Origin: Macrostomum lignano
Taxonomy: Eukaryota
Reading direction: 5' to 3'
NCBI GenBank assembly: GCA_002269645.1
Contig: NIVC01002426.1
Location: forward strand, 161,492-225,491
Length of the DNA: 64,000 nucleotides
Shown: positions 6,729 through 40,191 of the stretch, one piece after another
How positions within the stretch are numbered: the first letter of the stretch is position 1
How the letters are laid out: each line of letters opens with the position of its first letter
Made by a program: the position numbers and the translations under genes
The notes under the pieces: generated by a model
Told to the model about the DNA's origin: nothing
The model's database searches: none
Seen by the model: the letters and a program-made list of their open reading frames with translations, nothing else

Positions 6729-16451
<9,723 letters not shown>

Positions 16452-17153: not shown

Positions 17154-17942
17154 GAAATCAATAATCAAACACGCTATAATTTGTTAGTCGTACCAATTCG
17201 AGAATGTATACTTGGTCACATAACTCTAATGCATGCTGGACTTAGTGTATTTTTGAGTCGCACAAACAATTAAGTTAAATTTAAAAAAGCTAAATAAGGA
17301 TCACGAGCTAGTTACGATAAACCTTGCAGAAGTTAGCTGCTAAGAAAACAAAAGAGGGGTACCTATAAATACTTACTCAGGTAAACGGGAAAACAATTAT
17401 TAATCAATAATTGCAGAGAAGCTAACAAAAAACAGGCAAGATTGTGCAAATTAGTAATATCTAAGGGCAAAGTGCACAGAAGCATGCAGTTAGAAAGCAA
17501 AGAAAGCAGATAAAGTGGATGATAAGTGAGGAAATAAATAAGCAAGCAGTTATTTAGCATTATATTTGAACAATATTACAAATTACAACAGCAAAGTAAG
17601 TGGGGAAATAAAACAACAAATTGCTATTTGCAGAAACAGAAATGAGATATAGATAAAAACATGAACTATTTGTTCAAAAAAGTATTGGGCCAACAATTAA
17701 AGCGGTGTATTTTAATGTTGATTGGCTTAAATAAAATATTACCATTAAAAACCAAATATTGAAAGAATCAAGTAGAAAACGCTAACTCTGCAATAGGCAG
17801 ACTATGGAAAAAGTTCCACTGACAAAATTTATTCTCAGACTTGGAATTTGAAGAAAAACTGTGTTGATAAATTAAACAAAGTTTATTACATTATTCGCCT
17901 ACTAACAGTAGGCTAATCGTGACATCTTACAAATCAGATTAG

Positions 17943-18697
17943 AGTGAGACAGAGATAGACCAGACTGAGACAGAGATAGACCAGACTGAGACAGAGATAG
18001 ACCAGACTGAGAGAGAGATAGACCAGACTGAGGCAGAGATAGACCAGACTGAGAGAGAGATAGACCAGACTGAGACAGAGATAGACCAGACTGAGAGAGA
18101 GATAGACCAGACTGAGACGGAGATAGACCAGACTGAGGCAGAGATAGACCAGACTGAGACGGAGATAGACCAGACTGAGGCAGAGATAGACCAGACTGAG
18201 ACGGAGATAGACCAGACTGAGACGGAGATAGACCAGACTGAGACGGAGATAGACCAGACTGAGGCAGAGATAGACCAGACTGAGGCAGAGATAGACCAGA
18301 CTGAGAGAGAGATAGACCAGACTGAGACAGAGATAGACCAGACTGAGAGAGAGATAGACCAGACTGAGACGGAGATAGACCAGACTGAGGCAGAGATAGA
18401 CCAGACTGAGAGAGAGATAGACCAGACTGAGACAGAGATAGACCAGACTGAGAGAGAGATAGACCAGACTGAGACGGAGATAGACCAGACTGAGGCAGAG
18501 ATAGACCAGACTGAGACGGAGATAGACCAGACTGAGGCAGAGATAGACCAGACTGAGACGGAGATAGACCAGACTGAGACGGAGATAGACCAGACTGAGA
18601 CGGAGATAGACCAGACTGAGGCAGAGATAGACCAGACTGAGACGGAGATAGACCAGACTGAGACGGAGATAGACCAGACTGAGACGGAGATAGACAG
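17943..18697. repeat. 21-bp minisatellite (AGACTGAGACGGAGATAGACC)
   Basis: 7-aa periodicity in the spurious ORFs. Confidence 0.95.
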
Positions 18698-18713: not shown

Positions 18714-19130
18714 CTAAGCCGCTGGGGCAGGACTAAACGGATCTAAAACGGGCGGCGGCGGCGGCGGCGGCGGTGGCGGAGGCGGCGGTCGCCTCGGTCG
18801 CTCGGCCCGAATCAGACTGACAATATGAGCAGTCCTGGGAGTGACAACTCCGTGACAGACAATCCGACGACCTGAGACCTCAATTTGGACAACGTGCGGC
18901 AGAGACTCCAGATATTGGCGCAGATTGGCGTATTGACCGCCGAAGCTCCAGTCTAGCGGTCGATGGCACAGTCGTAAATATTGCCGTTCAAGCGACGGCA
19001 GAGGGACACCCCGTCGAGCTGATAACAGAACAGCCCTAAGTTGGCTCTCCTGTTCAAGGATACGAGCGTGCTGCTGCTGCCGTTCCGCGTCTGGAACTGG
19101 CGCCGCTTCCACTGCCGCCGCTTGAGCCAT
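18714..19130 (-). CDS. Short protein (138 aa) made of one extended LOTUS/OST-HTH domain plus a polyproline tail; either a separate gene or the terminal exon of the upstream LOTUS-Tudor gene
   Basis: GC-rich ORF. LRAVLLSARRGVPLPSLERQYLRL...LRQYLESLPHVVQIE...VCHGVVTPRTAHIVSLIRAER matches the TDRD7/TDRD5 N-terminal LOTUS (LRAVLQSHKNGVALPRLQGEYRSL...LEAYLRSVPAVVRIE...TARIAQLVARQR). Confidence 0.75.
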   Translation of the reverse strand: MAQAAAVEAAPVPDAERQQQHARILEQESQLRAVLLSARRGVPLPSLERQYLRLCHRPLDWSFGGQYANLRQYLESLPHVVQIEVSGRRIVCHGVVTPRTAHIVSLIRAERPRRPPPPPPPPPPPPPVLDPFSPAPAA

Positions 19131-19249
19131 GCAAAATATAGGCAATTTCACTTGCTATTAGGCATTTCACAGATTGGAAACTACTATAAGTAGAAAGAAT
19201 GCGATGCGAAACTAACTATGATTACAACATTCAATGTTTGTGTGATGAG

Positions 19250-19645
19250 ACTGACTGACTGACTGACTAACTGACTGACTGACTGACTGACTGACTGACT
19301 GACTGACTGACTGACTGACTGACTGACTGACTGACTGACTGACTGACTGACTGACTGACTGACTGACTGACTGACTGACTGACTGACTGACTGACTGACT
19401 GACTGACTGACTGACTGACTGACTGACTGACTGACTGACTGACTGACTGACTGACTGACTGACTGACTGACTGACTGACTGAGCGATTGAGTGAGAGGGT
19501 GAGCGATTGAGAGAGTGAGAGAATGAGTTAGTGAGCGAGAGTCGGTGAGTGAGTGAGCGAGAGTCGGTGAGTGAGTGAGCGAGAGTCGGTGAGTGAGTGA
19601 GTGAGAGTCGGTGAGTGAGTGAGCGACAGTCAGTGAGTGAGTGAT
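19250..19645. repeat. (GACT)n followed by (GAGT)-like repeats
   Basis: Direct. Confidence 0.95.
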
Positions 19646-19929
19646 CAAATAAATGAGTGATAAGTAATTAAATAAACATTTTGAAATTTCTCAAACAGAA
19701 AAATAAACGCAAATGAAACACCACAGGAAATTTTATTTTTAGGAACTTTTTTCTAAAAATAAACTTATAAATCGACCTTTGCAACAGAAACTGGCAAAGA
19801 TAATTATAGTTAGTAAATGCTTTATGCACACAAATTTGCACTACGCATGTACAATATTATGAAGGCGTCTTGGAGCAAATCAAATGAAATCGCATAATAT
19901 TATTTTATCGAGAGTTGAATAAACCACTC

Positions 19930-20492
19930 GCTAGCCAATCAAAAAATTGCATATCTTATCAAACTCTTTATCAGCCAATCAGAGAATCACAAATCTTATC
20001 TAACTTTCTTTATCAGCCAATTAGAGAATCGCATGTCTTATCTAACTTTCTACATCAGCCAATGAGAGAATCGCATGTCTTATCTAACTTTCTACATCAG
20101 CCAATCAGAGAATCGCATGTCTTATCTAACTTTCTACATCAGCCAATGAGAGAATCGCAAGTCTTATCTAACTTTCTACATCAGCCAATCAGAGAATCGC
20201 ATGTCTTATCTAACTTTCTACATCAGCCAATGAGAGAATCGCAAGTCTTATCTAACTTTCTACATCAGCCAATCAGAGAATCGCATGTCTTATCTAACTT
20301 TCTACATCAGCCAATCAGAGAATCGCATGTCTTATCTAACTTTCTTCATCAGCCAATCAGAAAATCGCATATCTTATCTAACTTTCTTCATCAGCCAATC
20401 AGAAAATCGCATATCTTATCTAACTTTCTTTATCAGCCAATCAGAGAATCGCATATCTCATCTAACTTTCTTCATCAGCCAATCAGAGAATC
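19930..20492. repeat. 42-bp minisatellite, 13 copies, each with a CAGCCAAT(C/G/T)AG CCAAT-box motif
   Basis: CAGCCAAT occurs at 19972+42n up to 20476. Confidence 0.95.
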
Positions 20493-20556
20493 TCGTTATT
20501 TTTCCTTCATCAGATGACTTTCAGGTCAAGTTGGTTTACTATGCTCAACTGTCTTC

Positions 20557-21376
20557 TCAATTGACCAGCTCAACCAATGGCAGCAAGCCGGCAGTCTCAC
20601 TGCCTTTAGTCAGCAGCCGAAAATTCCTGGCCGGCAGCCAGCCGTCATCACTGGAACAGCCGCCAGTCAGCACCCTACTGACGCTGCGCCGCTGACACCT
20701 GACAAAACCGCAGGCTGGCGGCAAATTAGCCAATCGCAATCGAATGAAGCCAAGTTCGCGAGCCATTTGTTTTATTAAATCTTCGTTCGCCTGCCGCCTA
20801 GATAAGTGCAATATAAGGCGACACACAGGCGGCAGGCGAATCAGCTGATCTAGCTGGATTCGCTGACAGCTGCTGCTGCTGCTGTTGAATGGCCAGTCCA
20901 TCAGCACAATGTCGCCTAATTCAGCCGAATAGTCCACGTCTAGCAGTCGGCATCGAGCCAGACAGCCGTCCGCTTCAACTAGATAGATTTCGTCCGATAG
21001 AATGACATCGGCTTGGCAGCGAACTCGACAGTGAAGAGCCGGCTCGGCAGTCAGGCGATTCAGTAACTGCCCGGCTTCGTCCAGTGTCGACTCAATTGAG
21101 CGGCGAAGCTCGACGATCGGGATGGTTTCTATAGCAACAAGATCTTCGGCGGCGGCCTCGTCAGAGTTCAAGAGGCGATAGCGGGCGGTAAACTGTTGGC
21201 CAGAGCGAAGCACTGATAGGTTGATGAAGCTCGTCTCGATGAAGCCGGGAGTCTGCGGCGGCGGAGACGGCGGCATGAGCAGGTTTGGTTGCTGCTGCTG
21301 CGATGGATTTCTTCTGTAGATGTACGGCCTGCAAAGGGCAGTGTGAAAATACAGGCGCAAAAATAGACAGACACTA

Positions 21377-21417
<41 letters not shown>

Positions 21418-21420
21418 CTA

Positions 21421-21491
<71 letters not shown>

Positions 21492-21522
21492 CTAAAACAG
21501 ACAGACAGACAGACAGACAGAC

Positions 21523-21581
<59 letters not shown>

Positions 21582-21594
21582 CAGACAGACACTA

Positions 21595-21627
<33 letters not shown>

Positions 21628-21703
21628 CACAGACAGACAGACAGACAGACAAGACAGACAGACAGACACACACAGACAGACAAGAAAGACAGACAGACAG
21701 GCG

Positions 21704-21753
<50 letters not shown>

Positions 21754-21800
21754 AAGACAGACAGAAAGACAGACAGAAAGACAGACAGACAGACAGACAC

Positions 21801-21849
<49 letters not shown>

Positions 21850-22532
21850 GGCAACTCACGGCAGAGTTTGCAGCGACTCTCTGGCTGCTGCTGGTCGGGG
21901 CGGAGGCGGTGGATTTTGCGACAGCTTCGTCTTTTGAGACGGCGGCATGAGCGGCTTTGGTTGCTTCTGCTGTTGCTGGGATGGAATTCTGTAGATGTAT
22001 GGGTTGCAAAGACCGGTTTGCAAATACACACTCTTGGAACGATACTTTGGCTTGAGGACAAATAAACAGATGGACAAACACACAAACAGACGCAGACAAC
22101 TCACGGTAGAGACTGTCTGGCTGCTGGTTGGGGCGGAGGCGGCGCATTTTGCGACACCTTTGCCTTCTGAGGCGGCGGCCGCCTAGAGACGGGAGCCGAG
22201 CCCGCGCCCCTGTTTCGCTTTCGCTTTTTATTAGACTTCTGCTTGTTGATCAGTTCCACAATAGCGCGAGAGGACTCCGTGACCACGCCGAAGCACCTGT
22301 AGCCGCCGCTGGACATTGGGTCCTGGCTGAGTCGGACCACATGCGGCAGGCCGGAAAGGTACTCCAGCAGAGTGCCCCGGCCTTGAAGGTCGAGCTGTTT
22401 TGAAGCCAGTACGCGATAATCTCTGAGCACTTCGCCAAGAGGCACGCCCTCCTTTGACGAGAGCAGCAGACAGCGGAGATTTACTTCTTGTTCTTCCTGG
22501 AATGCCAGCAGCGGTGACGATTTCCAGGGCAT
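20557..22532 (-). CDS. LOTUS plus degenerate extended-Tudor protein (TDRD5/Tejas-like); exons 22532-22105, 21988-21860, 21313-20557 (about 437 aa)
   Basis: Two phase-2 introns, each GTGAGTTG...CATCTACAG. The N-terminal eLOTUS is clear ([24 protein letters not shown]...[14 protein letters not shown]...[12 protein letters not shown]). The C-terminal segment resembles an extended Tudor fold ([18 protein letters not shown]...IVLMDW...LDQLIRLPP...LRLANLPP); the Tudor call is weaker than the LOTUS call. Confidence 0.72.
21364..21849. repeat. (GACA)n microsatellite in LOTUS-Tudor intron 2
   Basis: Direct. Confidence 0.97.

Positions 22533-24495: not shown

Positions 24496-40191
<15,696 letters not shown>

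Follow-up and report, generated by a model that had tools for sequence, protein, structure and literature searches.

In the literature consulted, the characterised extended LOTUS (eLOTUS) proteins, namely Oskar, TDRD5/Tejas, TDRD7/Tapas, MIP/EGGD and LOTR-1, are described as scaffolds by which Vasa is brought to germ granules or germ plasm. Within the LOTUS family this extended subclass is defined by a C-terminal extension that forms a helix, alpha5, on Vasa (Jeske et al. 2017; PMC5458760). Isolated eLOTUS domains of ~100 residues suffice in vitro for the binding of Vasa and the stimulation of its ATPase, and two residues of Oskar, A162 (small, and either Ala or Ser across the family) and L228 (either Leu or Ile), are required for Vasa binding and stimulation (PMC5458760). 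A 2026 preprint of the same group reported that a conserved Lys/Arg (Tejas K93, equivalent to Oskar K236) contributes to Vasa binding, and that the positively charged disordered stretch past this residue is needed for stimulation, by way of faster RNA engagement, and not for binding (bioRxiv 10.64898/2026.03.28.715021). It has been argued recently that Vasa activity is confined to places at which such a cofactor is located. Here we describe micro-LOTUS, a short open reading frame (ORF) of the flatworm Macrostomum lignano found in a stretch of 64,000 nucleotides (assembly GCA_002269645.1, contig NIVC01002426.1, positions 161,492 to 225,491; hereafter the window, in whose own numbering positions are given). 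Its best explanation, tentatively preferred at somewhat under an even chance, is that it represents an unannotated, probably functional gene for a stand-alone eLOTUS protein.

Parts and Fold of the micro-LOTUS Product

The micro-LOTUS ORF lies intact on the minus strand at 18714-19130, which corresponds to 180205-180621 of contig NIVC01002426.1, with its ATG at 19130 and a TAG at 18716-18714 after 138 codons, as the initial annotation had placed it. In-frame stops are present at 19160-19155, 8-10 codons 5' of the ATG, and the sole in-frame N-terminal extension would use a GTG start at 19151. The translation opens with an Ala/Gln-rich lead of 25 residues, which is followed by a winged helix-turn-helix LOTUS core (residues ~26-96; 18843-19055) and by the eLOTUS C-terminal extension (residues 97-111, TPRTAHIVSLIRAER; 18798-18842). 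A basic stub, P112-R113-R114, then leads into 13 consecutive prolines (residues 115-127; stub and run together at 18750-18797), and the chain ends with the 11 residues VLDPFSPAPAA (18717-18749), 27 residues past alpha5. The reading of the product as a LOTUS-like core, then TAHIVSLIRAER, then a long proline run is correct. The prolines are encoded by an imperfect CCG/GCC repeat at 18751-18788, the length of which is equal in all three genomic copies of the locus. A Pfam match to PRIMA1 (E = 8e-5, under its cut-off) was set aside as an artefact of this low-complexity run, and Rfam and tRNA scans of the window returned no matches.

Judged from sequence matches, the assignment of the product to LOTUS is far beyond chance. 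The initial annotation had proposed a LOTUS domain, and in the HMMER comparison with OST-HTH/LOTUS a match was obtained to Pfam OST-HTH (PF12872) at E = 9.6e-5, with a score just under the gathering score of the profile. A phmmer search of all PDB chains gave exclusively LOTUS structures as top matches, with TDRD7 at 2e-6 and 5e-6 and Oskar and TDRD5 at ~0.01. The core alone, searched exhaustively with HMMER against 1.84 billion representative proteins, yielded 51 matches (best E = 2.8e-10, identity not above 42% throughout), the best of them a spider 'TDRD7A'; all the matches scanned with Pfam, namely 18 TDRD5/7-like proteins and the M. lignano paralogs, have LOTUS, and many also have Tudor. 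Five columns of a 29-sequence alignment are at least 90% conserved (R32, G41, G65, P78 and H102), and micro-LOTUS has the conserved residue in every one of them.

The AlphaFold2 (AF2) model obtained from the same 29-sequence alignment has a predicted local distance difference test score (pLDDT) of 91 and a predicted template modelling score (pTM) of 0.70. It contains helices at residues 14-37, 44-55 and 70-75, strands at 81-86 and 89-94 and a further helix at 101-110, that is, a three-helix bundle with a beta-hairpin wing (81-94) and an additional helix, which corresponds to a winged helix-turn-helix fold. The top 18 Foldseek matches of the model are all LOTUS structures, the best being LOTUS1 of human TDRD7 (3rco; TM 0.85, root-mean-square deviation (RMSD) 1.2 A), and Foldseek also aligned it with TDRD5, with Tejas and with the Vasa-bound LOTUS of Oskar, the last over 82 columns with alpha5 included. 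Since the profile, PDB and library matches, the AF2 model and the eLOTUS features given below agree, the finding at the level of the domain is solid.

Extended LOTUS Features and Predicted Vasa Binding

The product had been described at the outset as a single extended LOTUS domain with its C-terminal extension and a polyproline tail, and the alignments, the AF2 helix and the ORF translation all agree with this. The helix at 101-110, which corresponds to alpha5, was modelled at high pLDDT, and its T-A-H-I-V-S-L-I aligns with the family motif T.HIA.LV and with alpha5 of Oskar. In the phmmer alignment, the numbering offset of which was checked at A162 and L228, the position of Oskar A162 is occupied by A33, a small side chain, and that of L228 by I103, a small hydrophobic residue. 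R111 stands at the position of Oskar K236 and Tejas K93 and supplies the conserved Lys/Arg, and the near-invariant alpha5 histidine of the family is kept as H102.

The segment past R111 is less typical. Its first seven residues, PRRPPPP, contain 2 Lys/Arg (family median 3, range 1-5), and the first 12 residues likewise contain 2 (family median 4, range 2-7), a value tied for the lowest, which makes stimulation of Vasa doubtful and counts against the preferred explanation. Because the basic tail is unusually short, micro-LOTUS may bind Vasa without activating it. To judge by the sequence, the predicted Vasa-binding features are present and the stimulation feature is marginal, and a binder or competitor appears at least as likely as an activator.

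Expression of macvasa, the vasa gene of M. lignano, is known from testes, ovaries and developing eggs. Micro-LOTUS would dock by alpha2 (A33) and alpha5 (H102, I103 and R111) onto the C-terminal RecA domain of the macvasa protein. Lacking any scaffold or condensate-forming domain and retaining just two arginines of the basic tail, it would most likely work as a small soluble Vasa-binding protein and not as a strong activator; it would modulate granule-anchored eLOTUS scaffolds, its neighbour among them, and might compete with them. A proline-recognition module (profilin, SH3, WW, EVH1 or GYF) could be attracted by the rigid polyproline tail, and this is the most speculative step of the proposal.

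An expressed stand-alone gene might also serve another function, with its LOTUS domain binding G-rich or G-quadruplex RNA and not acting as a Vasa cofactor. One report does attribute binding of G-rich and G-quadruplex RNA to LOTUS domains in general (PMC7498356). The domain of micro-LOTUS, however, belongs to the extended subclass and keeps the specific residues of the Vasa interface, and the eLOTUS domains tested alone bound neither single-stranded nor double-stranded RNA substrates (PMC5458760; bioRxiv 10.64898/2026.03.28.715021). Moreover, RNA binding and Vasa binding are not mutually exclusive, and a purely RNA-binding role is considered very improbable.

Genomic Copies, Constraint and Age of the Reading Frame

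The locus occurs in three copies on three contigs of the assembly, L002, L003 and L004, the last being NIVC01002426.1 itself, identical to the window over 21,934 nucleotides, and the other two lying on NIVC01001611.1 and NIVC01001575.1; the known redundancy of the M. lignano assembly fits the presence of the diverged copies L002 and L003. Gene order is the same in all three, namely myosin VI, a LOTUS gene, a gap without a called gene, and Tmp39, and the micro-LOTUS ORF falls inside the gap, uncalled in GCA_002269645.1 in any copy. Variable sites were counted in a three-way alignment of the copies masked with TRF. The micro-LOTUS coding sequence (CDS) is nucleotide-identical in the three (0/417), as is its 5' flank at 19131-19248 (0/118); the unique part of the intergenic spacer varies at 1/470 sites, the exons of the upstream LOTUS gene at 8/1345, and flanking non-coding DNA at 2.2-3.9% (43/1666, 54/1383 and 64/2918). 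The CDS is thus far more conserved than ordinary non-coding DNA, with 0 differences against 9-16 expected.

Several observations weigh against a functional gene. The CDS is not significantly more conserved than the ~3.8-kb block in which it lies (18714-22532, from the upstream ATG to the micro-LOTUS stop), which is variable at only ~0.4% of sites, unique spacer included, with 2.2-3.9% on both sides. The low divergence of this block could be due to gene conversion or to a shared or constrained transcription unit; being regional, it is no proof of selection on the ORF, and the ratio of nonsynonymous to synonymous rates (dN/dS) among the three copies was not computable because the CDS differences are zero. 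The product was absent from a collection of 15 billion proteins that includes both M. lignano annotations, as examined by word-indexed homology search, exact look-ups and exhaustive HMMER, and its absence from the older, UniProt-derived annotation is mildly negative. The OST-HTH score, 22.6 bits, falls 1.2 bits under the gathering score of 23.8. No canonical [TC]TNCAG trans-splice acceptor was found 5' of the ATG, and position -3 of the start context is a T.

The missing GenBank annotation can be explained, because the GenBank gene set of M. lignano left out transcripts overlapping repeat annotations, and micro-LOTUS carries a (GGC)n repeat and adjoins tandem arrays. It was accordingly given little weight against a gene.

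A longer span of time is covered by the comparison with the paralogs. By neighbour joining, the three LOTUS domains of M. lignano group together with 71.5% bootstrap, and micro-LOTUS is the first branch of this clade; the two long LOTUS genes are 49% identical to each other. Since micro-LOTUS predates the separation of the long genes, it cannot be a partial copy of recent date. Although only 35-42% identical to its paralogs, micro-LOTUS keeps an intact frame, free of frame-breaking indels, and R32, G41, G65, P78 and H102, and by our own calculation a random 138-codon frame at 61% GC would be stop-free with a probability of ~0.014. This long-term argument, an intact frame at an old divergence, is stronger for coding constraint than the comparison of copies.

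It could nevertheless be supposed that the ORF is a relic, an unexpressed, first-exon-sized remnant of an old LOTUS duplicate that has lost its downstream exons and promoter, with a recent onset of decay and with copies gene-converted after the recent genome duplication. Its 138 codons come close to the 143 codons of exon 1 of the neighbour, and its end, TAG/GTTAGA, resembles a decayed donor. It is uncalled in either M. lignano annotation and absent from the protein collections searched, the low divergence reaches into non-coding spacer, and the neighbour is without purifying selection among the copies, all eight of its substitutions being nonsynonymous. A relic is unlikely, however, when the frame is intact and without indels relative to the family despite 35-42% identity, when the AF2 model is confident, and when the five near-invariant and the interface residues are kept better than in the expressed neighbour, which has lost the near-invariant alpha5 histidine and has a cysteine at the A162 position. 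Exon-like GC content begins precisely at the ATG, a candidate poly(A) signal lies downstream, no remnant of a C-terminal domain was found downstream, and the repeat filter of the annotation accounts for the absence from it. A functional gene thus continues to be preferred, if tentatively.

Transcript Models

A model of two genes in tandem, which is also the arrangement first proposed for this locus, is favoured for micro-LOTUS and the upstream LOTUS gene, BOX15_Mlig011680g1, which lies 3.4 kb 5' of it on the same strand. Each of the three annotated copies of the upstream gene terminates at a stop of its own (...LVELVN). The GC content jumps from 0.30-0.37 to 0.70 precisely at the micro-LOTUS ATG, and each of the two LOTUS ORFs has a downstream AATAAA of its own. 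That of the upstream gene (19732-19737) is found ~820 nucleotides past its stop, and that of micro-LOTUS (17882-17887) ~827 nucleotides past its stop, just beyond an array of a 21-nucleotide unit; these are the candidate poly(A) signals. No GT[GA]AG donor occurs inside the micro-LOTUS ORF. A model with the ORF as first exon of a longer downstream gene was dropped because this canonical donor is missing.

Operons contain 15% of M. lignano genes and have been recognised by a repeat-adjusted spacing of less than 1 kb (PMC8629364). The spacer between the upstream stop at 20557 and the ATG at 19130 measures 1,426 nucleotides, of which ~470 are outside tandem repeats, and the two ORFs share a strand, so that the spacing falls within this limit. 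A bicistronic spliced-leader precursor shared with the upstream LOTUS gene is, from the sequence, plausible. Micro-LOTUS would be made from its own mature mRNA, with a 5' end at an AG acceptor 25-55 nucleotides upstream of the ATG, generated either by spliced-leader trans-splicing of this precursor or from a promoter of its own, and with a 3' end following the AATAAA at 17887. The AT-rich 5' flank (19131-19248) offers two pyrimidine-preceded candidate acceptors, 19184 (TTATAG) and 19155 (TAATAG, in phase 0 with the ORF).

The heptamer TTGCATG, which ends at the start codon (19130-19136), is identical to the 3' end of the 35-nucleotide M. lignano spliced leader (PMC8629364). The similarity amounts to 7 exact nucleotides and 11 of the last 14, is equalled by 6 of the 1,812 ATGs of the window (~0.3%) and was noticed post hoc. 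It could be due to chance, to a preferred start context or to a trace of a retro-copied trans-spliced mRNA; in the last case, the leader of that mRNA might be the source of the start codon together with the four preceding bases.

The initial annotation had also considered a fusion, in which micro-LOTUS is an alternative 3'-terminal coding exon of Mlig011680g1. The donor in question, A/GTGAGA in phase 1 (20595-20601), lies 42 nucleotides ahead of the stop of the upstream gene, and the alternative acceptor, GTTCCAG/AC at codon 14, has its AG at 19092-19091 and its exon from 19090 (19090-19092). Splicing from 20600 to 19091 would replace the last 14 residues of the upstream product by N-AERQQQ...LOTUS-polyPro, giving a LOTUS-X-LOTUS protein for which the ATG at 19130 is irrelevant. 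In favour of the fusion, the junction of the phase-1 donor with TTCCAG at 19091 is phase-compatible and reads ...TKG-N-AERQQQ... with no stop between, the acceptor has the CAG or [TC]TNCAG form of M. lignano acceptors (PMC8629364), and the intron of ~1.5 kb would be near the reported M. lignano average of 1.1-1.4 kb. Apart from microsatellites, the minus strand has just four GT[GA]AG motifs from 22900 to 17800; the proposed donor is one of them, and two more are real donors of the upstream gene. The unusually conserved spacer (1/470 among copies) might fit a single transcription unit. Against the fusion, the sequence ahead of the acceptor looks exonic: its last 40 nucleotides have 67% GC and many purines, whereas the two real introns of the gene end in pyrimidine-rich sequence, and the GC step is located at the ATG and not at 19091. 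The stronger AGs at 19184 and 19155 lie upstream and, joined to the donor at 20600, are out of phase or lead to immediate stops. Furthermore, all three annotated, transcript-derived models read past the donor to the stop, the paralog P0056 (Mlig011525g2) ends without a second, C-terminal LOTUS, and LOTUS domains are N-terminal in the known TDRD5/7 proteins. The chance of finding a GTGAG in the last 50 nucleotides of the exon together with one of three phase-1 CAGs is estimated at ~0.07-0.1, and the fusion as a whole appears improbable.

Taking the two-gene arrangement together with the predicted Vasa interface, it is tempting to speculate that micro-LOTUS is a natural binding-only eLOTUS, a diffusible micro-protein encoded in a spliced-leader operon with a scaffold-type paralog, in which polyproline stands for the basic tail. 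Occupying Vasa without activating it, or handing it to a proline-binding partner, it would serve the flatworm germline and stem cells as an endogenous antagonist, or a buffer, of Vasa activation that is restricted to granules. So specific a proposal has only a small chance of being right in all its parts.

The Upstream LOTUS Gene

Micro-LOTUS had been regarded as a paralog of the LOTUS domain encoded upstream, and rightly so: BLASTP of micro-LOTUS against the upstream ORF at 22101-22532 gave 35% identity at E = 5e-13, and the motifs listed in support are shared. The window contains these two LOTUS copies only. The spliced product of the upstream gene was recovered in the exhaustive search as P0038 (BOX15_Mlig029870g2), the cluster of which has three GenBank members. 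From the annotation, the splice-site reading and comparison within the window, exon 1 (22105-22532) comprises the ATG, the LOTUS domain and a basic, Pro-rich linker and ends at a phase-2 donor, CC/GTGAGT; exon 2 (21860-21988) is Pro/Gln-rich; and exon 3 (20557-21328) encodes a C-terminal domain of unconfirmed fold, followed by the stop. The introns have GTGAGT donors and ...CAG acceptors.

Exon 2 and its flanks look as if they arose by internal duplication of the tail of exon 1 plus the head of exon 3, with repetition of both the peptide PPxQKxKxSQNxPPPPxPAA and the acceptor context ...CATCTACAG|AA. In GenBank each of the three models is 5'-partial, beginning at Q15 despite the in-frame ATG at 22532. 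A TTCCAG acceptor at 22497, between this ATG and Q15, may be a spliced-leader trans-splice site; the spliced leader ...ATG would be in frame with GAA GAA CAA. All eight exonic substitutions among the three copies are nonsynonymous (W/R, Q/R, P/R, R/T, V/A, R/S by two adjacent bases, and G/S), and purifying selection on the gene since the genome duplication is not in evidence.

The label 'LOTUS-Tudor' that this neighbour had received is not supported. Neither its product nor the paralog P0056, to which its C-terminal 230 residues are 33% identical, gave a Pfam Tudor match at E <= 10, and a PDB phmmer search with the C-terminal domain gave no sequence match. The AF2 model of this domain is unreliable (pLDDT 38), and an hhalign comparison with an extended Tudor (eTudor) profile, built from ten bona fide eTudor domains of the LOTUS-Tudor proteins recovered in the exhaustive search, returned a probability of 0.07%. 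The predicted secondary structure (two strands, a long helix, several strands) is compatible with a very divergent eTudor but does not count as evidence in its favour. It is better to speak of the neighbour as a LOTUS-domain gene whose C-terminal domain is uncharacterised. As for the TDRD5/TDRD7 architecture, no Tudor was found in the micro-LOTUS ORF, and no Tudor-like sequence between the ORF and Tmp39.

The second long LOTUS gene of M. lignano is also represented at L001 (NIVC01000461.1, 10001-12830), where the 386-residue P0003 (Mlig016662g2) appears truncated in comparison with its 652-residue cluster-mate P0056. The C-terminal domain is present in other frames just 3' (ORFs 11011-11673 and 12465-12827), so that a frameshift or an incorrectly modelled intron is suspected in this copy. 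At this paralog locus there is no second LOTUS within 10 kb downstream, and no neighbouring gene is shared with the window. A full-text literature search for the IDs of the neighbouring genes found no mention of them.

Surrounding Elements

The spacer between the two LOTUS ORFs holds (GACT)n and related tandem arrays (19249-19650) and 13 copies of a 42-nucleotide unit (19933-20492), as detected by a repeat scan. Past the micro-LOTUS ORF, 36 copies of the 21-nucleotide unit mentioned above begin 19 nucleotides after the stop (17941-18695) and would belong to the 3' untranslated region. A stop, a long tandem array and an AATAAA ~820 nucleotides past the stop is a layout common to both LOTUS ORFs. 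The myosin VI gene (24496-34200, minus strand) is annotated in all three copies of the locus; its introns carry huge tandem arrays (~28.2-30.5 kb, and (AGAC)n at 33.6-34.2 kb) that vary in length among the copies. The Tmp39 gene, of the TMEM39 family, runs from 16451 down on the minus strand, ~2.3 kb past the micro-LOTUS stop, after an AT-rich stretch (31-33% GC).

Comparison with Known LOTUS Proteins

If micro-LOTUS is what it appears to be, a free eLOTUS of 138 residues would separate the binding of Vasa from its localisation, and the truncated basic tail might separate binding from activation, which would provide a natural tool for the localisation-gating model. Transgenesis and in situ hybridisation are available in M. 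lignano and make a test practical. The case of micro-LOTUS also indicates that the GenBank gene set of this species can overlook short genes that lie among tandem repeats.

In both sequence and structure the closest counterpart is the N-terminal eLOTUS of TDRD7/Tapas (3rco, 2lh9; phmmer 2e-6, TM 0.85, RMSD 1.2 A, 37% identity), with which micro-LOTUS shares the RAVL..S motif, with Ala at the Oskar A162 position, and the T.HI..L motif of alpha5. TDRD7, however, has ~1,000 residues, with further LOTUS domains and several Tudor domains that anchor it in granules, whereas micro-LOTUS ends 27 residues past alpha5, and the Lys/Arg-rich tail of TDRD7 is replaced in micro-LOTUS by RPRR and then 13 Pro.

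The complex of the Oskar eLOTUS with the C-terminal RecA domain of Vasa (5nt7; Jeske et al. 2017) shows the same fold, including alpha5, and the equivalent residue pairs A162/A33, L228/I103 and K236/R111. The Oskar domain is just 23-25% identical to that of micro-LOTUS. Oskar also carries an OSK domain. A further difference is that its LOTUS dimerises in drosophilids (PMC5458760).

The long M. lignano genes, Mlig011680/029870 and Mlig011525/016662, belong to the same species-specific LOTUS clade, are 35-41% identical to micro-LOTUS and likewise have a Pro-rich segment past the basic stub. They differ in continuing into low-complexity linkers and a shared C-terminal domain of ~200 residues, and in having strongly basic tails, with 5-6 Lys/Arg past alpha5 (6 in the immediate neighbour).

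In Caenorhabditis elegans, MIP-1/EGGD-1, MIP-2/EGGD-2 and LOTR-1 are LOTUS proteins reported to bring in or activate GLH-1, the Vasa homolog, in germ granules. They differ from micro-LOTUS in being large scaffolds, multi-domain or disordered, that have either two LOTUS domains or LOTUS and Tudor together.

Short predictions consisting of LOTUS only are represented by an ORF of 100 residues in a copepod transcript (P0026, marked 'complete') and by a mussel gene model of 96 residues (P0041). Both have a single eLOTUS with alpha5 and little else, as has micro-LOTUS; they differ in having short basic or neutral tails and no polyproline, carry no functional name in their sources and may be fragmentary models. 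As they are only ~30% identical to micro-LOTUS, they are not its orthologs. The domain itself is known, and what differs from the characterised eLOTUS proteins of the literature consulted is its arrangement: the eLOTUS stands alone, next to a longer paralog, and polyproline takes the position of its basic tail.

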